Source: Macrostomum lignano (lineage: Eukaryota). From it: a stretch of DNA of 41,924 bases. The stretch is taken from the NCBI GenBank assembly GCA_002269645.1, contig NIVC01004562.1:1-41924 (forward strand). Direction: 5' to 3'. The translations under genes and the position numbers were made by a program. Below the pieces are notes generated by a model. The model worked only from the letters and a program-made list of their open reading frames with translations, was not told the origin of the DNA and did not search any database. Shown one piece after another: positions 1 through 34,619 of this stretch (positions within the stretch are counted from its first letter, which is position 1; each line of letters opens with the position of its first letter).

Positions 1-1624
1 CAATGAAAACACAGCCTCTTATAAATCAGTCATTCACCTTTGGCCAATAGACTCAAAGCTTTCCCCCCCTAGCCATGCCTGTTCTGCAGTAGATGAGCGG
101 CCAAGCTCCTGGATTAATTCAGTGCGTCTCCCTGTCCCCAAGCTTGTCCCAGGTCTCCCCCTGCTCCCCCATTGCTTTTTGTGTACACAGGGACATACAA
201 AGCGTACGCGCGTGACCCTCCTAGTTGGCACCCCAGAACTGTACTCCATCAGCCAACAGCAGATCTGCTTGGCGGTTTTACTTCGGCTTAACCGCTGCCC
301 TTCAACCCTCCCCGTCTCACCGCCGCCCCACCCGCGCCGCTTTTAGTTTCCTCCGGCCTCGCCACCTTTTCTTGTCTCTTCCCCTTGGCCCAAATTTGTC
401 TCTCAGTCTTTCATCTCTCGCCCCCCTCTATTTCTCTCTTATCTCGACCTTCTATCTCCAATTTCCTTGCTCACACAGGCGTTGGCGGCATTCACTAGCC
501 AAAGTTCCCATCGCTTCCACCCTCTCCCACTTCTCTATCCCAGCCTCCCAAATTTCATTCCGATTCTACCGCCTCTCTTCTCGGGCCCTACCGCATTAGC
601 CTAGTTCTAACTGGTGCAGTCCGTGCCTGGTTTATTATTATTGAGTCGGCTAGCTAGACTAAATCTGCTGTTTAAGGTTTCGCTGAAATTATGGAAATAT
701 TTTGAATTAATATAATATATATTTCAATAAGCTATACTGTATTAATTCTCTTCTCCCTTTATAATGCATGCTTCACTATCATTATTTAAAATTTGCCTAG
801 AGCTTTACAAACGCGAGAAGAGTGATGGGGGGAGTACAGAAATATTGAATGGTGGACGGATAAGGCTGTTAACGAGATGTCTCGTCTTATTTCTACATTG
901 TTCGGGATAGGCCATGCGGTGCGCTTGCCCTGTAGAACAGCAAGAAGCAATGTGACAGGCCAGGCGGCAGTGGTGGAGAAGCATGAACTGCCCGCCCCCA
1001 CTCGATTGGAAGCTCTGCTGGATGCTTCCTGCTTGCAGTTGGCGTGTGTGTTCGTCTCACTAGGATAGAGTCGGAACGAAGCTGGGAACGCACTGGGGAG
1101 CTCTCGATTGAGATGCTTATGAACTGGTCCAGTCTGAGGCTACTGCAGTTTTTTGGTCGCAGTTGTGAGGAGGAGAGAATAGGGAAGAACTTAAGAGAGA
1201 GAAAGGAACGAGGAATAGATGATGGGGAGCTTTGCTCTAATTACTGCTGCCCTACTTGTGGTGCACTGTTTCCTAGTCGTTTCTAGCCGCCAGCCGTGCC
1301 TCCCTGCCTCTCCTTCCTCTGCTCTAGTTAATTTTGAGTTTCTCCTCCGGCCAGTCGCGGCATGTCAGTCTTGTGCCGTCCAGCCAACCTATTCAAACAG
1401 GAACGAAGCGTCCAATCTAACTTCAGTCTGTGTTTGCTTATGAGTAGGCTAATACCTGCCTACCGGTTCGGTTCCTAAATTTTGTAGTTTTTTGTAAGAA
1501 ACCGCAACCATAGCGTAATTAGCGGGCTTCCGTGTACCCCTTATGTTGGTATCCGATTTCCGATTTCTATCATAGCTGCGTTGGAAGTTTCCCTGTCCTC
1601 CAAAGATATTTTACTGCCTTTACT

Positions 1625-4301: not shown

Positions 4302-6152
4302 CAAAGTATAAAGTAGATCCTTTACACTGCCATGGCAGAGTAGAAAGTAGATCCTTTACACTGCAATGGCAGAGTAGAAAGTAGATCCTTTACACTGCCA
4401 TGGCAGAGTAGAAAGTAGATCCTTTACACTGCCATAGGAGAGTAGAAAGTAGATCCTTTACACTGCCATGGCAGAGTAGAAAGTAGATCCTTTACACTGC
4501 CATGGCAGAGTAGAAAGTAGATCCTTTACACTGCAATGGCAGAGTAGAAAGTAGATCCTTTACACTGCCATGGCAGAGTAGAAAGTAGATCCTTTACACT
4601 GCCATGGGAGAGTAGAAAGTAGATCCTTTACACTGCCATAGGAGAGTAGAAAGTAGATCCTTTACACTGCCATAGGAGAGTAGAAAGTAGATCCTTTACA
4701 CTGGCATGGCAGAGTAGAAAGTAGATCCTTTACACTGCCATAGGAGAGTAGAAAGTAGATCCTTTACACTGGCATGGCAGAGTAGAAAGTAGATCCTTTA
4801 CACTGGCATGGCAGAGTAGAAAGTAGATCCTTTACACTGGCATGGCAGAGTAGAAAGTAGATCCTTTACACTGGCATGGCAGAGTAGAAAGTAGATCCTT
4901 TACACTGCAATGGGAGAGTAGAAAGTAGATCCTTTACACTGCAATGGGAGAGTAGAAAGTAGATCCTTTACACTGCCATAAGAGAGTAGAAAGTAGATCC
5001 TTTACACTGCAATGGGAGAGTAGAAAGTAGATCCTTTACACTGCGATTGGGGGTGGAATTATGACTTCAGTCCTGGAACTTTTATGACGCACAGTGTAAG
5101 TCTTTTACACTGCCATGGGAGAGTAGAAAGTAGATCCTTTACACTGCAATGGGAGAGTAGAAAGTAGATCCTTTACACTGCCATGGGAGAGTAGAAAGTA
5201 GATACTTTACACTGCCATGGGAGAGTAGAAAGTAGATACTTTACACTGCAATGGGAGAGTAGAAAGTAGATCCTTTACACTGCCATAGGAGAGTAGAAAG
5301 TAGATCCTTTACACTGCCATAGGAGAGTAGAAAGTAGATCCTTTACACTGGCATGGCAGAGTAGAAAGTAGATCCTTTACACTGCCATAGGAGAGTAGAA
5401 AGTAGATCCTTTACACTGGCATGGCAGAGTAGAAAGTAGATCCTTTACACTGGCATGGCAGAGTAGAAAGTAGATCCTTTACACTGGCATGGCAGAGTAG
5501 AAAGTAGATCCTTTACACTGGCATGGCAGAGTAGAAAGTAGATCCTTTACACTGCAATGGGAGAGTAGAAAGTAGATCCTTTACACTGCAATGGGAGAGT
5601 AGAAAGTAGATCCTTTACACTGCCATAAGAGAGTAGAAAGTAGATCCTTTACACTGCAATGGGAGAGTAGAAAGTAGATCCTTTACACTGCGATTGGGGG
5701 TGGAATTATGACTTCAGTCCTGGAACTTTTATGACGCACAGTGTAAGTCTTTTACACTGCCATGGGAGAGTAGAAAGTAGATCCTTTACACTGCAATGGG
5801 AGAGTAGAAAGTAGATCCTTTACACTGCCATGGGAGAGTAGAAAGTAGATACTTTACACTGCCATGGGAGAGTAGAAAGTAGATACTTTACACTGCAATG
5901 GGAGAGTAGAAAGTAGATCCTTTACACTGCGATTGGGGGTGGAATTATGACTTCAGTCCTGGAACTTTTGACACACAGTGTAAGTCTTTTACACTGCCAT
6001 GGGAGAGTAGAAAGTAGATCCTTTACACTGAAATGGGAGAGTAGAAAGTAGATCCTTTACACTGAAATGGGAGAGTAGAAAGTAGATCCTTTACACTGAC
6101 ATGGGAGAGTAGAAAGTTCATCCTTTACACTGACATGGCAGAGTAGAAAGTA
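4302..6152. repeat. 34-bp satellite (AGAGTAGAAAGTAGATCCTTTACACTGCCATGGC), ~50 copies, interrupted three times by a ~69-bp variant unit
   Basis: Invariant core with variation confined to a few bases after ACACTG. Variant units start at ~5041, ~5688 and ~5927 (offsets 647 = 17x34+69 and 239 = 5x34+69). Confidence 0.97.
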
Positions 6153-6162
6153 GGCCCATCGC

Positions 6163-6170: not shown

Positions 6171-6271
6171 AGTAGAATTGAAAGTAGAACCGTTGCTGTC
6201 AATTCTCAATGAAGTGGATCCGTCGCCTTAAAAATGAGCCGAACTCCCAATGACAGCTGAATGATTTCGCA

Positions 6272-9200
6272 TTGCTGCTACCCGCATTCGGTTATCCGCC
6301 CATCGCGGGCTACCAGCCGATGCCTGGCCGGCTCGGCCAGCAACTGCTTCATCATCAGCATCATCTTCATCATTCCATGCTGGCTCAACAGCCTGGCGCT
6401 GTTGGAGTCCAGACGGCAGCCCAGTCGGCAATGGTTAGCGGCACAGGCGAAATCGATAAGAAAGGCGAGCCGTACTGCAAAGCTGTGTACGCTGTTGCGG
6501 AGCGCTATTTGAAACACATGTCGCCTGAACAGCGCGAAGATATGCGCAAATTATTCAATTCGTGGAAGAATGCACCAGATAAGCTTGACGTTAGTTTCAT
6601 GTACAAATTAAGCGGTTGGCGCGCCGTCTACACATTGAATCTGTTTCGCAGTCGAATTCAGACAGTTTGGTTCTCGTTGAAACAGTTGCTATCCAGCCAG
6701 AGCGGTATTGGGCCGCAGTTGGCCGAGATTTTGAATCGCACCCAGCGTATTGTCAGCATCGGCTGCGGCCCTGGTCCTTGCATAGCCTCCATCCTTATCG
6801 CACTCCGAGACTACGTCGGATTCACCAAGTACGTTAAGCTGATTGGCATCGACCAGTTCATTGGCTGGGGCCCGTATGTCACTTCGATGAATAGCGTTGA
6901 AGAGGCCGGTGCCAGTAGTGTCGAATTCTGGCACGAACGAGTAGAAGAGGCCACTATAGATTCGCTGCCAAATGCGGATGTGGCTATAATGTCTTACACT
7001 GACGCAGCTATTCATACGCCAAAGTTCTGGGAGACGATGCGCATGAAATTTGCTTTCATCCTGGTGCTAGACCAGCGCAAAGGCGCTCTGTCACGCGAGT
7101 TGCAGCGCCAAGGATTCGGCCACTTCGAATACGAGTTCAAGGGTAGCAAGCGAGTGTTTTATTACATTAATCCGTTTGGCGAGTTTCTTAAGCTGGCTCA
7201 CGGAGCCGGTGGCGGCGGCGCCCGCGGAACATTCGATGGAGCCGGTGGCTTGCGGGCAGGCGGAGCTGACGACGACGACGACGACAATGATTCTTCCGTG
7301 TTTGACGACGACAGCTCTCTGTCGACATCGTCGTCTTGCTCCGGCTCGTCCTATTCGTCAGATGAAGAAGAAGATAACGCAGCTTCTGCCGCTCTAGAAG
7401 ATTCTGAAACGGTTGCTCGCGAAGTTGAACAGGTTGTGACGTTCCTGCTCGACAAAACCGAGGAGTCGCTGCTGCTTGGCCGCGACGAATCGATACGTCC
7501 GCACGCCGTCACCCCGGAGGAGATCGCCCTAGCCGCGGCGGTTGTCCGCCAGGCGGAGGCGCACGATCGAACAATTGATAAGCGGCGAGTTGTTGAAAAC
7601 ACCATTGACGTGTCGCTAGAACTGGAGGCCATCATCACCAAGGAGCTCGTGGCCGCTGTTGAAAGTATGAACGCGTCGGCTGCTGCCGCCGAAAACAGCA
7701 AATCGTCTTCTTCATCGACCAAGTCCAAGAAGCAGCACCGACAGTCCCGTCGAAGTCGCCAATCCAAGACAATGTTGGCGACCACAGTGGAGTTGGACGA
7801 AGACGAGCTGTCGACGCTGAACGACGCCAACAGTTCGAGCGACGCTACCATAGTCGACAAGAAGTCCTCAACTCAACAGTCTGCGCCGACATCATCGACG
7901 CCTGGTCGGCCAGCTGCACCAGCGCCGGTGTTTGTGTCGGTGCCAATCTCGCAGATCGCCGAACTGGAACAGGTTCGCCGTATCGAACAGGAACTCGGCC
8001 TGCCGTCGGTGCCAAAACGTAAAGTTGAAAATCTCAATCTGTCGCGCAATCGGCACAGAGCCCAGCTGAATAAGACTCAGCAGGACCAGCTAGTCAAAGC
8101 GCTACTACGCGACATGGGCGAAGATCCCGACGAGGCTGCCGCCGGACAAGGCAGCGGCAGCTCTAGTAGCAGCGACGACGAAGAAGAAGAAGAGAACGAG
8201 AATGTCAACGAGCTGTGCGACGCTGATATTGAGGAGAAGTACTTTCCAAAGCTTGACAAATCGGCTGCTGGTAGCGGCGCAAAGGCCGCTTCTTCAGCAG
8301 CAGCAGCTACAATATCAACAACTACAGCAGTCTCGGTGTCGCAGCCGACCCAGTCGAAACCAACGCTGGCACCGACACCGATGAATAAAGTCGGCGTCAG
8401 CGCTGCAGCGACAGCCGGCGGCGGCAGCGAACGAGTCCTATCGGTGAAGATGCCGGAGTGGGCGCAGTCTCTCATCCACAGCTGGTCAGGCGAGTCGTCT
8501 GGCCACATTCTCAGCGCTTCTCGCCGACCCGGCGCCGGCGGCAATAAATCTGCCTGTATTATCAACCTGACTGGCGGCCCGATGCCGCCTATTGGAGCAG
8601 TCGGTCCCAGCAGGCCGATGCAAAATCAGCAGCAGCAGCAACAGCAATGGCGCAGTCCAGCGCCTAATAATAATCCCCAACGCCAACCGGCTCCATTGGT
8701 GCATTCGCCTGGCGGGCCGATTTCAACTGGCTATCAGCAGCGCCCAGTCATGGCCCCGCCGACTATGCCACCTCGGCCTTCGCTTGCGCAGGGCTATCAG
8801 CATCAGGGCCAAGCTGCGGAGCCGCCAAGCCAAGTCGCTGGCTATCCAGCCAAGCCCGCTGCCGCCGCCGCAGCCTCCGCGCCTTTGTCGGCAGCCGCCG
8901 CCAGACGGATGACTGAAGACGAGCGAATCCTTGAAGAGGAGACCCAGAAATTTCTCGAACGGATGGGCGTTATTAAACCGAGCGGAGGCGGCGGCAGCAG
9001 CGGTGGCAGTCGGGAACGCGACAGGGACCGGGACCGAAATCGAGATCGGGATCCGGACTATGGGCGCGGTCGGGATAGAGATCGATTTAGTCGCCGGCGG
9101 CAACTGTCCTCGCAGCGACGCTCGCCGCCCCGATCCCCGCCTCGATCCCCGTCTCGGTCGCCGTCTGAATCACCGAAGCAGCAAAAGCAGCAGAGGGTGC

Positions 9201-9937
9201 CGCGATCGCCGCCTCGATCGCCCAGGTCGCCGCCTTCGTCGCCGAAGCGACGTCGACAATCGTCGCCGCCGCCGCCGCCGCCGAAGTCTTCGCCACAGCG
9301 GCAGCAGCCTCTGGCAGCCGCTACGGCTGCCACGGTGTCGCCAGTGGCCAGACAGACCAGTCTGGTCTCTGTTGTCGTTGCAGCCGATGCCGGTTCTGGC
9401 GGCGGCTCCGTGTCGAATTCTTCGTCGACGTTGAAGCGATCGTCCCGACAGCGGCAAGCCAGCGCCAGCAGCGGCAGCAGTAAACGGCAGAAACTGCCGA
9501 AGCCTTCCCCCGAGAGTAGCCGAGATCAGGTCAAGGACAAACGACGGTCGGCCGAACTCAAGAAGGAACGCGATAAAGAGAAAGAAAAAGAAAAGGAAAA
9601 AGAGAAAAAGAAGCGACACGAACAACGCCAGCTTGAGGAGAAAAAGAAGAAGAAAAAGCATCACCAGCATCATCATCATCATCACCGCGGCAGTGCCGAG
9701 AAGGACAAGCGACAGTCCTCAAAGTCGGTTAAAACAAAGGACAAAGGCAGCGCCAACAACAGGATCGACTCGCCCGACCTGCGGGCACTCGAGGATCTGG
9801 AATTTGTTAGCGAAGATTCTGATCTTGAGCAGTTGAACTATGCTCACCAGCTGGCTGCAGAAGCGGCGGCTAAAAAGCAACAGCAGCAGGTTCTTAACGG
9901 AACCAGCGATAATAAGCGAATCAAATCAAAGCGATAA
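6272..9937 (+). CDS. Class I SAM-dependent methyltransferase domain protein with long intrinsically disordered tail (~1,205-1,220 aa, single exon)
   Basis: 3.67-kb uninterrupted GC-rich ORF. Motif I RIVSIGCGPG (~6746-6775), acidic post-I strand KLIGID, motif IV-like ADVAIMSY; domain spans ~6470-7190. It is followed by acidic/Ser, Pro/Gln, RD/RS-SP, KE, poly-K and poly-H tracts. First ATG in the open frame is 6320 (MPGRLG); the true start is uncertain. AATAAA at 9982. Confidence 0.85.
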   Translation: MLLPAFGYPPIAGYQPMPGRLGQQLLHHQHHLHHSMLAQQPGAVGVQTAAQSAMVSGTGEIDKKGEPYCKAVYAVAERYLKHMSPEQREDMRKLFNSWKNAPDKLDVSFMYKLSGWRAVYTLNLFRSRIQTVWFSLKQLLSSQSGIGPQLAEILNRTQRIVSIGCGPGPCIASILIALRDYVGFTKYVKLIGIDQFIGWGPYVTSMNSVEEAGASSVEFWHERVEEATIDSLPNADVAIMSYTDAAIHTPKFWETMRMKFAFILVLDQRKGALSRELQRQGFGHFEYEFKGSKRVFYYINPFGEFLKLAHGAGGGGARGTFDGAGGLRAGGADDDDDDNDSSVFDDDSSLSTSSSCSGSSYSSDEEEDNAASAALEDSETVAREVEQVVTFLLDKTEESLLLGRDESIRPHAVTPEEIALAAAVVRQAEAHDRTIDKRRVVENTIDVSLELEAIITKELVAAVESMNASAAAAENSKSSSSSTKSKKQHRQSRRSRQSKTMLATTVELDEDELSTLNDANSSSDATIVDKKSSTQQSAPTSSTPGRPAAPAPVFVSVPISQIAELEQVRRIEQELGLPSVPKRKVENLNLSRNRHRAQLNKTQQDQLVKALLRDMGEDPDEAAAGQGSGSSSSSDDEEEEENENVNELCDADIEEKYFPKLDKSAAGSGAKAASSAAAATISTTTAVSVSQPTQSKPTLAPTPMNKVGVSAAATAGGGSERVLSVKMPEWAQSLIHSWSGESSGHILSASRRPGAGGNKSACIINLTGGPMPPIGAVGPSRPMQNQQQQQQQWRSPAPNNNPQRQPAPLVHSPGGPISTGYQQRPVMAPPTMPPRPSLAQGYQHQGQAAEPPSQVAGYPAKPAAAAAASAPLSAAAARRMTEDERILEEETQKFLERMGVIKPSGGGGSSGGSRERDRDRDRNRDRDPDYGRGRDRDRFSRRRQLSSQRRSPPRSPPRSPSRSPSESPKQQKQQRVPRSPPRSPRSPPSSPKRRRQSSPPPPPPKSSPQRQQPLAAATAATVSPVARQTSLVSVVVAADAGSGGGSVSNSSSTLKRSSRQRQASASSGSSKRQKLPKPSPESSRDQVKDKRRSAELKKERDKEKEKEKEKEKKKRHEQRQLEEKKKKKKHHQHHHHHHRGSAEKDKRQSSKSVKTKDKGSANNRIDSPDLRALEDLEFVSEDSDLEQLNYAHQLAAEAAAKKQQQQVLNGTSDNKRIKSKR

Positions 9938-9977
9938 AATCAACATTTCAAAATGCATTGATGACAGCGACCTGGCT

Positions 9978-9987
9978 ATTAAATAAA
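9978..9987 (+). terminator. Polyadenylation signal (overlapping ATTAAA/AATAAA)
   Basis: Lies ~45 bp after the TAA stop at 9937. Confidence 0.55.
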
Positions 9988-10387
9988 AAAACACAAATGC
10001 CTACTCTTTGAAATATGCATTTACTCGCGCATTCATGCCTACCAAAAACTCTTAATAAGCGCTTTTACATGCGTCTGTGCGTATGTGTCTATCACCGGTG
10101 CTTCATTCAAGCGTCATGTAATAATTATTATTTTAACAAGGTTATTTAGGGAAAATCATATATGGTCGTATTATATAGTTGCTGTGTATCGCAGATACCA
10201 GAATAACTACTAGATGTTGTCCCTCGCAATTAAAGCTGTCGAAAGTAGTTGCGTCTACTCTTTTTTCAGTAGTTTGTCTGCGCAGTGTCACTAAAATTTC
10301 AAGTGGCAGCTAAAATTTGCGGCCTCAAGAACATATGTGGTTAAGAACAAGCTTTTAATTCGGTGTACACAAGTAAACACAAAACGA

Positions 10388-10615
10388 ACTAAACTCAGTC
10401 TGGGGGCAGGCCTAATCTGGCTCAGCCAATGGGAGAGCAGTAAGGAGAGAGGTCGAAGTCAGACACACGAAACTCAGTCTAGGCCTAGGGGGAAGGCCCA
10501 ATTTAGCTCAGCCAATGGGAGAGCAGTAAGGAGAGAGGTCGGTCGAAACTTAGCCTAGGGGGTAGGCTCAACCTTGCTCAGCCAATAGGAGAGCATTACT
10601 CGTAAGGAGAGAGAT
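10388..10615. repeat. Three degenerate ~70-80 bp tandem units sharing GCTCAGCCAATRGGAGAGCA...TAAGGAGAGAG
   Basis: Core seen at ~10421, ~10506 and ~10576. Confidence 0.7.
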
Positions 10616-11449
10616 CAAAAGTTAGACACAATCGGGCAAGAGAGAAGCCAAGAAAGGCCTGGCTAGGGGCCGCCATCCCTTTTCTCTCTTGCTCGCTATG
10701 CATACACTGGGTTTGGATTTTTATTTCTTTCATTTCTTTGTTAAGAATTTTCGGGTCTGATGCTGGGAGTCGGTAAAACAAGATGAAGATGCTAATCTAA
10801 TGGTTCCGCTTGCAGAAAGCCAGAGACAATTTAAAAAAAACTTGAAAAAAAATCTTTTATAATGTAATCATTTTTTCTCATATAGGCAAAAACGCTATTT
10901 TGCTACTGAAAACAGAGTAGATAAGCGCATTTTGCAAGTGACATCTATCAATAGTTATTCTAGTATCTGTGATATGTATCGAATTCTTTTGTTGCAAAAA
11001 GGTTTCTTTAAAAAGACAAAAAAATTCTATAACAGATAACCCTTTCAATTTCCCATTTTGTCTAAGTTACAAAATCACAATATGTGTTGCTTTGTGTAGA
11101 TACACAACTCCTAACTTCATTAAAACAATTTTTAGATTTCAAAATGTGTTTGTTTAAAGCTTTGATTGCCTTTCATATTGCGATAATTGATGGTATTTTT
11201 TATTATACAGTGTTCGATTCGAATATATGTTCTCTCTGTTTATATTGTGTCTCTTAAAGTCCTATTGCAGTCTGCTAGCTCTACTGAGACTGGGGTAACC
11301 CTCAGTACAAACTACAAAGGCTGTATACTTACTATGTAAGCCAGGACCCAGTTTATTTTCAGCAAAATTAATATGCGGTTTAGTTACATTGGATGAGAAC
11401 TTGTGTATAGATTACCTTGTCCTTTGGATTCACTCAGTACTAGCTTCTG

Positions 11450-31053: not shown

Positions 31054-32028
31054 TTCTTGGCATACATCTTGATGCATACTGTAAGACGCGAAATTCAGCT
31101 TATACGCCCCATGCATAGGAAATATTAGCTACGCTTCTGGGTCTCACGTCGCCTTTGCAGCTCTCTAGGAAGAGATGTTTTACGGGAGAACCCGTGCCAT
31201 TGAGTGGCAGTCCTTGGGAAGAGCCTGACCCAAAGCCTGACCTCATTAATGCCTCTGAATACGCTCGCAGGATGTCTGCTTGAAAAGTCGCGGCTAAAGC
31301 AATCGCGGCAAGACCAAGCTATAAATTGGCCTCCTAGCAAAACTTCTTTTTCTACCCTCCCCCTGGCTGTGCTTAATTTCGCGCTCCGTTGAGATTTAAA
31401 ACCTCACTATAGAAAATAGGCAGTACTCATACTAATATATAAGCTACTCAGCAAAAACTGGTTCCGCAGACGATTTGCATCTAATCAAAGCTCAAAAGAC
31501 TCGTTTCGTTTTTTTTGTTCTGAGATGCAGACAGTTGAAAGAAGAGAGGCACTGAATTAATTATTTAATGGCAAATAGTATGGGCATCGAATGGGACGGA
31601 CTGACTTGTTTATAGAGACCTGAATTGAAGGCAAGCAGTTGGCACAATGAAAGCGAGTCGTGAGCAAGCCAAGCGAAAGTTAAAGTTTCTTGCTTTCTAC
31701 TTTGCTCCCTGCTCTACGATGCTGTATCACTCTGGTCCTATTGAGCAGCGCCATTAACTGGTTTATTAGTGTAGAGAGCAGTGAAGATAACATCTCTCTC
31801 TCTCTGTTCTCATCTCTGCCTCTGATTGTCTGTCTTTCTACAGCTTGGTTTGGCTGATGCCATGGTCTCTTCTGGTTTGCTGAGCCCAGCCTTGGCCAAT
31901 GGAGAGAGCGCAGCGACCCGTCAGTCAGTCTACGGCTCCTTATTCCCACTGGGGGAGCTAGCTTCAGCTAATATCTCTCTCTGTCGGCTCTACACTGGAT
32001 GCATAACCTTCGACGGTTTAGCATAGCC

Positions 32029-34619
32029 ATGACTGCTCAGCTTCTTTGTCGTCTTCATCAACTCATCTTGCTGTCCAATTTGTTGGCCTTTTCATCTCAA
32101 CAACAACAGCAGCAGCCGTGGCAGCCTCCGCAGGCTGAACTGCCGTCGCCTCAATGCGTCTGCTTCGTTCGTAGACCGGACAGTGAGCACCCGCCGCACC
32201 AGCAGCAGCATCCGCAGCAGCAGCTGTTCTGCCGGAACCGGCACTCTCTGCCGGGCGACCCCGCCACGACTTCAGCCGGTCACGTTGGCGGCCGGCCAGT
32301 GGCCAAGGACTTTCTTTGCTCCCACGGCCGCCTGTTCGTCCGCGGCGCCGGCGTCACCGCTATCGAGGGCGAACTGGCGCGCAGTCTGGAAGTGGCGCCC
32401 AGACTGCAGTGGCTCGACTTGAGCGACAATCAGCTTGGCGCCCTGCAGCAGCCGCACTTCGCTTCGATGCCAAACTTGCGTCGTCTTGAGCTACAGAACA
32501 ACGCCATCGCGTCTGTCGGCTTCCAGGCGTTCGATCGGCTTCGATTTCTCATCTACCTGGACCTCAGCCACAATCGAATCGACGAGGTCACGGCGCTCAC
32601 CTTCGGCACGAGGCGAGTCCGCGAGCGCCACCCGAGCGCCGGCTCGTCCTGCGGCATCCGCAGCCTCCGCTTCCTTTATTTGAACGACAACCGCATCAGT
32701 CGCGTCGAGCCGAACAGCTTCGAATGCCTCGAAGCGCTCGAGGAGCTCCGACTGGAGCGCAACCTCATCGCTGTGCTACCGAACTTCGCTTTCAAATGGC
32801 TGAACTCGCTCAACAGTCTGAAGCTGCATGGCAACCGGCTGGAAAGCGTGGAGGAATTCGCATTCGGCCACTGCTGCGGCCGCCTGACTCAGCTCAGCCT
32901 GGTGGACAATCAGCTTGGCTACCTGCCGGACCATCTGCTCATCGGCATGCCGAATCTCACCGGGCTCTACCTGGACCGAAACCAATTCGATCGAGTGCCC
33001 AGCGTTCGAGGACCAGCCAGACTAATCGACTTTCACCTGCAAAGAAACCACATTGTCCGAATTAGGCGCCGGCATTTCCTGGCCTGGTCAGCCGCGGCCG
33101 AGTCATTGAACATGTTCGACAACAGCCTGCGCTGGATCGAGGACGGCGCCTTCGGCGGCCTGCCGCCGGGCACGGTCAGCCTTGTGCTGCAGAAGAACGA
33201 GCTGAGCAGCTTGGGCCAGCGGACACTGGACGGCTTGACTCACCTGAGGTACCTGGTGCTGGCAGACAATCGAATTGACAGCATCGAGGATGGCGCCTTC
33301 GGACACCTGGTCCGGCTGGAGACTCTGTCGCTGGCCGGGAACCGGCTGACCAGCCTGCGGCCGAACATGTTCGCCGGGCTAAATCGGACATTTGCGCTGA
33401 GCTTGGGTAGCAACGAGATTTCGAGGTGTGTTTCTATTTGTGTTTTCATTCGCGAGCAACTGCTAAAATGCTCCATATCCCCTCCCTATCTTACCCTAAC
33501 AGCCTCCCAACCAAAGCGTTCTCCCGCCTGCCCAGTCTGAAGTATCTCTACCTGGAGAAGAACAGCCTGGACTCTGTGCCAGCCGGCATGCTCTCGGGAC
33601 TGAACCGCCTCAAGAAGCTGGACCTCAGCGACAACCGCATCTCCAGGCTGCACCCGCAGGCCCTGGCCAGCCAGACTGACCTCGCCTTCCTCGACCTAAG
33701 CGGCAACCGGCTCAGTCGGCTCTGCTCAGCTCAGCTGCTCGGACCCGCCAATCGGCTGAGCTTCCTGTCTCTGGCCAAGAACCGCCTGACCCGACTCGAC
33801 CCCGACCTGCTGTCGGGCCTCAACCGCCTGCAGGTGCTCGACCTGAGCAGCAATCGGTTGACTCGATTCGACGGCGACCAATCCGACTCGCGGCTCACTG
33901 GCGGGCCGGCCCGGCTGCGCTCGCTGGATCTGGCCGGAAATCCACGGCTGCAGCTCACCGGCTGCTCCCTGTGCGGCCTGGAGACTCTGCGTTACGTCCG
34001 TCTGCCCGGAGTCGTCAACGGCAGCGGCATCGGCGACCTGCTGCAGGACCCGTCGTCGCCGTGCTCCTCGCCCGGCCAGCGAGCCGCCTGCCAGACGCTG
34101 CGGCGAGCTGAACTGGAGCAGCTGCGCACTGCGGCTTGTCGACAGCTGCCAGAAGACGCATCGATTCAAGGAGGAACCGCGCCACCGTCCACTGCGGCAG
34201 CGGCGGCAGCAGCAGCAGCAGCTGGCGATGCCAGTCTGCATCGGGCGATGCTTCTCGTATCGCTGCCGGCTGTGAGCCTCCTGCTGCTGACGCTGCTGGC
34301 CATAGCAACCGTGTACTGCTGCTTGGCCTCGATGCGGAAGCGGCGGCGGCAGCAGCAGCGCTCAAGACCGGTGGACGAGTCTGGGCCGGCAGCGGGTCTG
34401 TCGGCTGAGCTGACTCTGCCGGCGTCAGCGAGACATCGGCAGCTGCACGACGATTGTCAGCCCGGCGTCGGCCTGTTGGAGTTGAACATCGCGCAGCAGC
34501 GACTGTTCCAGCAGCGGCAGCAGCGGCAGCACAGAGGCTCCTGTTGCTCATCGTCTGTCGCGTCGTCCGGCTCCGAGATGCCGAAGTTTTCCAACAAAGT
34601 GTACAGCAACCTGCTGTAG
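32029..34619 (+). CDS. Type I transmembrane leucine-rich-repeat receptor, ~20 LRRs, no TIR domain, 2 exons, ~837 aa
   Basis: Exons 32029-33425 and 33503-34619; the 77-bp intron AG|GTGTGT...TAACAG|C joins the two track ORFs in frame (EISSLPTKAF). Features: signal-like N-terminus, Cys-containing LRRNT, ~20 LxxLxLxxN repeats, hydrophobic TM at ~34248-34335 followed by RKRRR, and a ~95-aa tail ending VYSNLL. Alternative ATG at 31999. Confidence 0.9.

Follow-up and report, generated by a model that had tools for sequence, protein, structure and literature searches.

The class I methyltransferases that depend on S-adenosylmethionine (SAM) are recognised by their fold, a seven-stranded sheet with the strand order 3-2-1-4-5-7-6 in which strand 7 is antiparallel; the acidic residue that ends strand 2 binds the ribose of SAM. 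Canonical SR proteins are recognised by their architecture, namely one or two N-terminal RNA-recognition motifs (RRMs) and, at the C-terminus, an RS domain that is 50 or more residues long and has an RS content above 40%. Both descriptions bear on a single gene of the free-living flatworm Macrostomum lignano, at positions 6254-9937 of the forward strand of contig NIVC01004562.1 (assembly GCA_002269645.1); the window, as the term is used here, is the whole stretch analysed, positions 1 to 41,924 of that contig. The gene encodes a predicted methyltransferase domain followed by a long tail of alternating charge. The named enzyme family that comes nearest to the domain, below threshold, is PF11312 (Methyltransf_34), that of the yeast 25S ribosomal RNA uracil2843-N3 methyltransferase Bmt6 (EC 2.1.1.312; PMC5307852).

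The locus is a real gene of M. lignano: it codes for protein, is expressed and has a single exon. From its predicted structure, the domain (residues 61-310) can be assigned with confidence to the class I SAM-methyltransferase fold, with a four-helix cap and a seven-stranded core, and by sequence comparison it belongs to an uncharacterised, flatworm-centred family. The gene does not represent a new type of system: the fold is well known, the family variant within it is uncharacterised, and one lineage shows an unusual architecture. The explanation that is probably right as a whole joins a class I methyltransferase-fold domain of a flatworm family to a disordered tail that would target it to the nucleus, with RNA weakly favoured as the substrate.

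The open frame as a gene

Between a TGA at 6251-6253 and a TAA stop at 9935-9937 there is one continuous forward frame of about 1,220 codons, ending where the first-pass annotation of this DNA had placed it. At the local base composition, 1,227 codons without a stop have a chance of about 1e-20, and the remaining five frames over the 6254-9937 interval contain 24-59 stops each. From residue 4 onward the translation is exactly that of a public protein of the same assembly (P0020), a ‘hypothetical protein’ of 1,218 amino acids (aa) that is partial at its 5' end and has one coding sequence (CDS) of 3,657 nucleotides (nt); the single exon claimed in the first-pass annotation stands to the extent that this gene model has it. 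Residues are numbered here from the TTG at 6272, giving 1,221 in the protein scanned. That codon is merely the first bacterial-code start given by the program that listed open reading frames (ORFs), and no real start; the first in-frame genomic ATG is at 6320 (MPGRLGQQ...).

The public gene models of M. lignano derive from a genome-guided assembly of RNA-sequencing (RNA-seq) reads, with gene boundaries cut where trans-splice and poly(A) sites had been mapped by experiment (PMC5730564); the locus at 6254-9937 is therefore transcribed. The ORF is present on three separate contigs. A copy that is 99% identical, on a contig of its own, is deposited as PAA74335.1 (‘hypothetical protein BOX15_Mlig009940g3, partial’). 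The window is the third contig, with a CDS identical to that of P0020 and an upstream satellite of different length, which fits the known redundancy of GCA_002269645.1 (PMC5730564). A literature search on the gene identifier Mlig009940 returned no match.

Selection was estimated by setting the window CDS against a second genomic copy (L004). Over the domain (residues 60-320) the two differ by nine synonymous and no nonsynonymous substitutions, a ratio of nonsynonymous to synonymous rates (dN/dS) of 0; over the tail (residues 321-1221) the counts are 18 and nine (dN/dS 0.16), with two indels, each a single codon long and in frame; residues 1-60, the leader, show zero substitutions. By this comparison the whole ORF is under purifying selection, with weaker constraint on the tail than on the domain. 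The bias toward synonymous change and the one-codon indels mean that the tail is translated and constrained; together with its collinearity with the tail of a paralog (see below), they agree with the earlier claim that the domain is fused to the tail, the two being parts of one conserved coding sequence.

Predicted fold, family and origin of the domain

With a 13-sequence alignment, AlphaFold2 modelled residues 61-310 with a predicted local distance difference test score (pLDDT) of 88.7 and a predicted template-modelling score (pTM) of 0.87; the alignment was required, the single sequence giving an unusable pLDDT of 39. The model places seven strands in the canonical class I order, terminal hairpin included. 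Foldseek returned 193 matches in the PDB at E<=1e-3, and the best 50 of these are all methyltransferases or methyltransferase-fold enzymes, with template-modelling (TM) scores of 0.36-0.47 (best query TM-score, TMq, 0.47); the PDB matches span unrelated subfamilies (DnrK/RdmB, ChlM, METTL16, RumA, Trm5a, MnmM). Most named structural matches in BFVD are methyltransferases as well. The first-pass annotation had read a Rossmann-type methyltransferase domain from three motifs, VSIGCGPG, LIGID and ADVAIMSY. All three are present where it put them (Table 1), and the combination of AlphaFold and Foldseek that it proposed as a check has returned a class I fold, in agreement, at the level of prediction, with that reading. 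The top structural match in either library is a viral protein, A0A481YR48, a 635-aa methyltransferase of Marseillevirus LCMAC101 (in BFVD; TMq 0.64 over 272 columns, 12% identity).

Across an alignment of 29 homologues G164, G166, D194, W199, D236, W253 and D267 are invariant, and P167 and G168 nearly so; the cap carries the family-conserved motifs Y..W and (F/W)RAxY (conserved columns Y35, W38, F56 and Y60). The domain would thus share with the class I superfamily the seven-stranded sheet, the hairpin of strands 6 and 7, a GxGxG-type motif I and the acidic residue of strand 2, and differ from the superfamily at large in its own four-helix cap and its own invariant set of W199, W253 and D267. 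Since the SAM-binding features are intact, above all the GxGPG loop and the Asp of strand 2, SAM binding and methyl transfer are the most likely activities of the protein.

No named family can be assigned to it, as the first-pass annotation had found. The Pfam scan of the 1,221-residue protein gave only DUF4719, below threshold and driven by low complexity, with no RRM and no other domain; the NCBIfam scan gave no match; and a phmmer search and two family-profile searches against all PDB sequences gave nothing meaningful (the best matches, a dehydrogenase and an acyl carrier protein, had E>0.06). When 13 family members were scanned one by one against Pfam at E<=10, PF11312 was the sole family matched by more than one of them (four of the 13, best E 0.0099). 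The consensus of one branch of the family (clade C, below) matched profile positions 50-145 at E 0.0093 and 15.7 bits; the window protein itself gave no match to PF11312. The likeness to Bmt6 includes a similar length of sequence before motif I (profile positions 50-145 fall on residues 70-170), but the alignment lies mostly in the generic stretch from motif I to strand 2, scores do not exceed 15.7 bits and homology is not established. Bmt6 proteins are not known to have a long disordered tail.

Two other candidates were rejected. A loose resemblance to the Rsm22/METTL17 enzymes (PF09243) had been suggested in the first-pass annotation; it did not survive, as there was no Pfam match, no PDB sequence matched at E<=10 by the 29-sequence profile and no such enzyme among the best 50 of the 193 Foldseek matches. 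Those enzymes and the window protein have a GxGPG-like glycine loop and the class I fold in common, but the tail of the window protein carries clusters resembling nuclear localisation signals (NLSs) and is without the features of a mitochondrial presequence. The label ‘N2227 domain-containing’, which UniRef gives to several cestode members of one branch (clade B, below), pointed to carnosine N-methyltransferases (PF07942), class I enzymes that, like the present family, have N-terminal helical extensions. That model matched none of the 13 members at E<=10 and did not match the Hymenolepis protein bearing the name at E<=1; the 29-sequence profile matched no PDB sequence at E<=10, and CARNMT1-type structures were absent from the best 50 of the 193 Foldseek matches.

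The relatives that were found are few. A phmmer scan of 1.84 billion representative proteins gave 19 matches at E<=1e-3; those with names are all from flatworms (Macrostomum, cestodes, trematodes and monogeneans), and in that scan no bacterial, archaeal or viral homologue appeared. This single-sequence search thus placed the family in no named taxon besides flatworms, in keeping with the lineage restriction proposed in the first-pass annotation. A word-indexed homologue search with the window domain alone returned nothing, and alignment queries gave relatives. The names already given to members are ‘unnamed’, ‘hypothetical’, ‘N2227 domain-containing’ and ‘Class I SAM-dependent methyltransferase’.

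Cluster look-ups, a profile search and a neighbour-joining tree resolve three branches. Clade A holds the window protein, its M. lignano paralog P0002 (UniRef A0A1I8IXL6; 1,094 aa, domain 80% identical) and three proteins from Logan run assemblies, P0003 (run DRR639838, another species; 592 aa, domain 50% identical), P0004 and P0014; the three full-length proteins of this clade are all long-tailed. Clade B consists of compact proteins of about 290-346 residues from trematodes (Schistosoma, Trichobilharzia, Heterobilharzia, Clonorchis, Paragonimus, Fasciola and Echinostoma), from Taenia, Hymenolepis, Rodentolepis, Mesocestoides, Spirometra, Protopolystoma and Cichlidogyrus, and from M. lignano itself (P0016). 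Clade C comprises proteins of about 240-310 residues on eukaryote-like contigs of environmental assemblies (samples ERZ21788760 and ERZ25073846); because these contigs appear eukaryotic, the family is not strictly confined to flatworms. Two of its members are uninterrupted ORFs (L002 6001-6792 and L003 6001-6924), on contigs of 0.36-1.17 Mb that are poor in ORFs and have a guanine-cytosine (GC) content of about 40%.

Some paralogs have peculiarities of their own. In a second M. lignano group, placed in clade B (P0010, P0026 and P0027; L006 4001-5326), the proteins end in a tandem repeat of 11 residues, GSQPVSAAGDA, whose copy number varies among genomic copies (proteins of 386, 397 and 441 aa); the domain has therefore gained a tail more than once in Macrostomum. 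In P0002, around residues 133-142, motif I reads RVHRL--RSGPC where the window protein has RIVSIGCGPGPC, which resembles a short frame-shifted stretch; either the older assembly contains an indel error or the paralog is without the SAM loop. The UniRef name of P0002, ‘FERM domain-containing protein’, is not supported by its sequence.

Introns enter the account because the first-pass annotation had contrasted this gene with spliced neighbours and raised retroposition or horizontal capture. All three M. lignano paralog groups (the window group, P0026 and P0016) have single-exon CDSs, so the absence of introns is a property of the family in Macrostomum, nothing special to this gene, and is no evidence for recent retroposition or capture at the locus. 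Elsewhere the relatives are spliced: the Hymenolepis gene has three introns, and the DRR639838 gene has one just before RALYT (P0014 looks like an upstream exon read into an intron); intron positions differ between these two lineages.

The tail and the proposed function

The tail is of low hydrophobicity. Ser accounts for 14% of its residues, Ala for 11%, Arg and Pro for 8% each, and Glu, Lys and Gln for 7% each. Its net charge per 50 residues swings between acidic blocks of -9 to -13 and basic blocks of +8 to +12. All the tracts listed in the first-pass annotation (the His/Gln leader and the acidic/Ser, Pro/Gln, RD, RSPP, KEKE, poly-K and poly-H tracts) are present as it placed them, and classical NLS-like clusters lie at residues 992, 1071, 1112-1129 (bipartite) and 1215. 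Against shuffled sequences the tail is enriched in RD/DR dipeptides (18 observed, 9.1 expected), SP (16 and 10.0) and KE/EK (15 and 9.3).

The description of the tail as SR-protein-like, offered in the first-pass annotation, holds for one part of it. With SR and SRRM-type proteins the tail shares a block of about 90 residues (914-1005) that contains an RD run and RSPP/RSPS/SP repeats, flanked by K/E-rich and His-rich runs of a composition found in nuclear speckle and nucleolar proteins; a 12-bp tandem repeat lies within the block at 9131-9166. Even there only about one-third of the residues fall in RS dipeptides, the repeats are RSPP and not (RS)n, and the remainder of the tail is acidic/Ser-, Ala- and Pro/Gln-rich. 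The clustering of RS/SR is limited to about 50 residues (about 10 dipeptides in 940-990, mostly in RSPP/RSPS units), with 21 observed over the whole tail. A canonical SR protein was therefore rejected: Pfam finds no RRM, and RS dipeptides are enriched only locally.

The tail has a history of its own. With composition adjustment, BLASTP found no significant similarity between it and the tails of the paralogs. Unadjusted Smith-Waterman alignment runs collinearly with the P0002 tail over about 870 residues (score 278, against a maximum of 121 in 100 shuffles) and finds one common island in the P0003 tail (score 107, maximum 80 in 100 shuffles). The tail was therefore already present in the ancestor of clade A; it evolves fast and keeps short islands (Table 1). 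The leader, residues 1-60, is not shared with P0002.

How might such a protein work? The domain would carry out SAM-dependent methyl transfer, and the tail would most likely take the enzyme into the nucleus, to highly charged bodies rich in RNA, for instance the nucleolus or speckles. Nuclear localisation through the K/R clusters is plausible, and so is methylation of nuclear RNA. Nucleolar and speckle proteins typically carry acidic-Ser tracts and runs of KEKE, poly-K and His; by analogy, the composition of the tail suggests association with these bodies. RNA as the substrate is weakly favoured by the sub-threshold similarity to PF11312 and Bmt6. It is unlikely, though worth stating, that the entire flatworm-centred family modifies RNA, possibly as a remote sister of Bmt6, with the tail of the Macrostomum paralog taking the enzyme to nucleolar or speckle condensates. 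Such a family, previously unrecognised, would span all the major lineages of parasitic flatworms (Schistosoma, Fasciola, Clonorchis, Taenia, Hymenolepis and the monogeneans), and sequence comparison would detect no vertebrate relative.

A number of points weigh against a nuclear, RNA-directed methyltransferase. The fold is predicted, and the alignment behind it is shallow (13 sequences). In the window protein GPGP is followed by Cys, where most relatives have Asp or Glu. The top Foldseek matches are mostly small-molecule O-methyltransferases (DnrK, RdmB, ChlM), at TM-scores of 0.36-0.47. The PF11312 signal reaches 15.7 bits where the curated gathering cut-off is 26, lies mostly in the generic motif I region, and no curated model reaches threshold. 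RS/SR dipeptides are not enriched tail-wide (21 observed against 21.7 expected from shuffles), and low-complexity charged tails are non-specific predictors of localisation. Finally, the window copy is without the AG acceptor found in L004 (TTGCTG against TTGCAG), so that the 5' end and the start codon are uncertain.

The structural matches in particular can be taken another way. Were the domain a small-molecule or protein methyltransferase (for instance a metabolite O- or N-methyltransferase), the cap would close over a small substrate and the tail, a quickly evolving stretch of low complexity, would have no targeting role. This is unlikely. It draws on the N-terminal helical domains of the best PDB matches (PsoF, DnrK/RdmB, ChlM and a plant norbelladine O-methyltransferase), on the compactness of clade B (about 300 residues, without a nucleic-acid-binding module) and on the ‘N2227’ label of the cestode members. 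Those matches, however, have TM-scores of only 0.36-0.47 and stand beside the RNA enzymes METTL16, RumA, Trm5a and MnmM; the Pfam N2227 model matches no member even at E<=10; and a tail of neutral filler would not account for conserved islands, NLS-like clusters and a dN/dS of 0.16. Alternatively, the fold may be kept as a binding module only, in a pseudo-enzyme or scaffold whose relevant activity resides in the disordered tail. The disrupted motif I of P0002, in a domain otherwise 80% identical, would suit this, as would the Cys that replaces Asp/Glu after GPGx in both long-tail genes of M. lignano (clade A). Such a scaffold is nevertheless quite unlikely, given that the window protein retains an intact motif I and all family-invariant residues, that no nonsynonymous change separates the domains of the genomic copies, and that the P0002 lesion is frame-shift-like, comes from an older assembly and may be a sequencing error.

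Two further explanations concern the origin and the reality of the gene. Transfer of the catalytic module from a bacterium or virus, or a recent retrocopy, would explain a single-exon CDS in a species whose genes have about five introns on average (PMC5730564), while the Hymenolepis and DRR639838 relatives contain introns; the best BFVD match, moreover, is viral (TMq 0.64). This is very improbable. The scan of 1.84 billion representatives contained no bacterial, archaeal or viral homologue, its named matches being all flatworm, and the horizontal capture raised in the first-pass annotation thus finds no donor there; the LCMAC101 match, at 12% identity, is likeness at the level of the fold only. 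As for a retrocopy, the three M. lignano paralog groups are anciently diverged and all single-exon, so that intron loss is old or general, and the region 3' of the gene contains no poly(A) relic besides a normal AATAAA. That the long ORF is an artefact, with two genes fused or a tail of non-coding low-complexity DNA, is scarcely credible. The tail is compositionally biased, stop codons are rarer in GC-rich sequence and the public model is flagged partial; but the chance of so long an open frame is minute and the other frames are full of stops, the ORF recurs on three separate contigs and has a model derived from RNA-seq (PMC5730564), substitutions are biased toward synonymous ones, indels come in multiples of three, and the tail is collinear with that of a paralog. 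The fused-gene artefact is largely refuted by these observations.

If the domain is active, free-living Macrostomum shares with schistosomes, liver flukes and tapeworms a conserved methyltransferase family without a Pfam model, a solved structure or a characterised member; such a family could serve chemistry on RNA or metabolites that is specific to the lineage, and might offer a parasite-selective target. In an animal for which RNA interference and transgenesis are established, the long-tailed paralog is a ready-made case for studying how a charge-patterned disordered tail redirects a small enzyme. If it is merely a diverged housekeeping methyltransferase, the gain is one of annotation only, from ‘hypothetical protein’ to ‘class I SAM-methyltransferase-fold protein’.

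Gene ends and other features of the window

Table 1. Features of the gene and its protein (positions in the window; residues counted from the TTG at 6272)
Feature	Residues	Positions	Strand	Remarks
Probable 5' end / trans-splice region		6254..6280	+	from alignment of gene copies
N-terminal leader	1-60	6272..6451	+	Pro/Gly/Gln/His-rich; LLHHQHHLHH at residues 25-34
First genomic in-frame ATG		6320..6322	+	alternative start if the mRNA is not trans-spliced
Predicted helical cap	61-156	6452..6739	+	four helices, H2-21, H25-40, H54-80, H87-96 (AlphaFold2)
Predicted class I (Rossmann-type) core	157-300	6740..7171	+	seven predicted strands including terminal strand 6-7 hairpin
Motif I, VSIGCGPG	161-168	6752..6775	+	glycine-rich SAM-binding loop after strand 1
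Strand 2, LIGID	190-194	6839..6853	+	ends in invariant Asp194; invariant Trp199 follows
Strand 4 motif, ADVAIMSY	235-242	6974..6997	+	Asp236 invariant, Ser241 nearly invariant
Strand 5, ILVLD		7058..7072	+	ends in invariant Asp267; invariant Trp253 precedes
C-terminal tail	311-1221	7202..9934	+	low hydrophobicity, alternating acidic/basic blocks
Acidic/Ser tract	333-368	7268..7375	+	
Conserved tail island 1	384-467	7421..7672	+	EVEQVVTFLLDKTEESLLLG ... LELEAIITKELVAAVESMN; common to P0002
Conserved tail island 2	557-618	7940..8125	+	VPISQIAELEQVRRIEQELG ... QLVKALLRDMGED, then acidic run; common to P0003
Conserved tail island 3	721-740	8432..8491	+	RVLSVKMPEWAQSLIHSWSG; P0002 counterpart KVLSVHMPDWARDLIANWSTG
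Pro/Gln region	~770-850			
Arg-rich block	914-1005	9011..9286	+	RD run 914-938; RSPP/RSPS/SP repeats 949-1005; NLS-like KRRRQ at 992
KEKE repeat, poly-K, NLS-like cluster, His run	1097-1138	9560..9685	+	bipartite NLS-like KKKRHEQRQLEEKKKKKK
Conserved C-terminal acidic island	1173-1190	9788..9841	+	LEDLEFVSEDSDLEQLNY; P0002 counterpart EEFVSEDSDLDLLDY
AATAAA polyadenylation-signal consensus		9982..9987	+	starts 45 nt past the stop; sequence pattern only

The 5' end of the messenger RNA (mRNA) is probably made through spliced-leader trans-splicing, in which case the terminal AUG of the leader could serve as the start codon. In M. lignano the trans-splice acceptor motif is [T/C]TNCAG, and ATG forms the last three letters of the 35-nt spliced leader (PMC8629364). 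The L004 copy (9975-10003) has TTGCAG, which fits this motif, directly before the first codons of its annotated 5'-partial CDS (CTA CCC ...); the window copy, like a third copy (L001), has TTGCTG at that place (6272-6277 in the window). Upstream the situation is reversed: the window copy and L001 have an in-frame CAG 21 nt further up (6254-6256 in the window), where L004 has CAA. With CAG at one site per copy, each copy keeps one candidate acceptor in frame, and at either site the leader would contribute its ATG in frame (M-LPAFGYPP... in L004). In the published annotation scheme, which cuts transcriptional units at trans-splice sites (PMC5730564), the ‘.g3’ suffix of the gene identifier may stand for the third gene of its unit.

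A 34-bp tandem satellite occupies 4305-6153 of the window (54 copies, 87% match, consensus AGTAGAAAGTAGATCCTTTACACTGCCATGGGAG), in what may be the outron or promoter region; about 100 bp separate its end from the ORF downstream. Its core occurs as an exact copy 42 times in the window, 53 times in L001 and 14 times in L004.

Further from the gene, a 22-bp tandem array of 27 copies (CTCTACTCGCTTGAGAATCACC) lies at 1623-2200, in a C-rich stretch with a GC skew of about -0.2 and no convincing ORF. Downstream of the gene, a unit of about 60-65 bp (…GCTCAGCCAATGGGAGAGCAGTAAGGAGAGAGGTCG…) occurs three times at 10400-10620; the copies were spotted by eye, and Tandem Repeats Finder at its default score did not report them. 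At 31999-34619, on the forward strand, overlapping ORFs of 513 and 397 aa in a GC-rich block (GC about 0.61) encode leucine-rich repeats (LRRs; LRR_8, E 5e-62 and 1e-33); both probably belong to a single LRR gene that is broken by an intron or a frameshift near 33430-33540.

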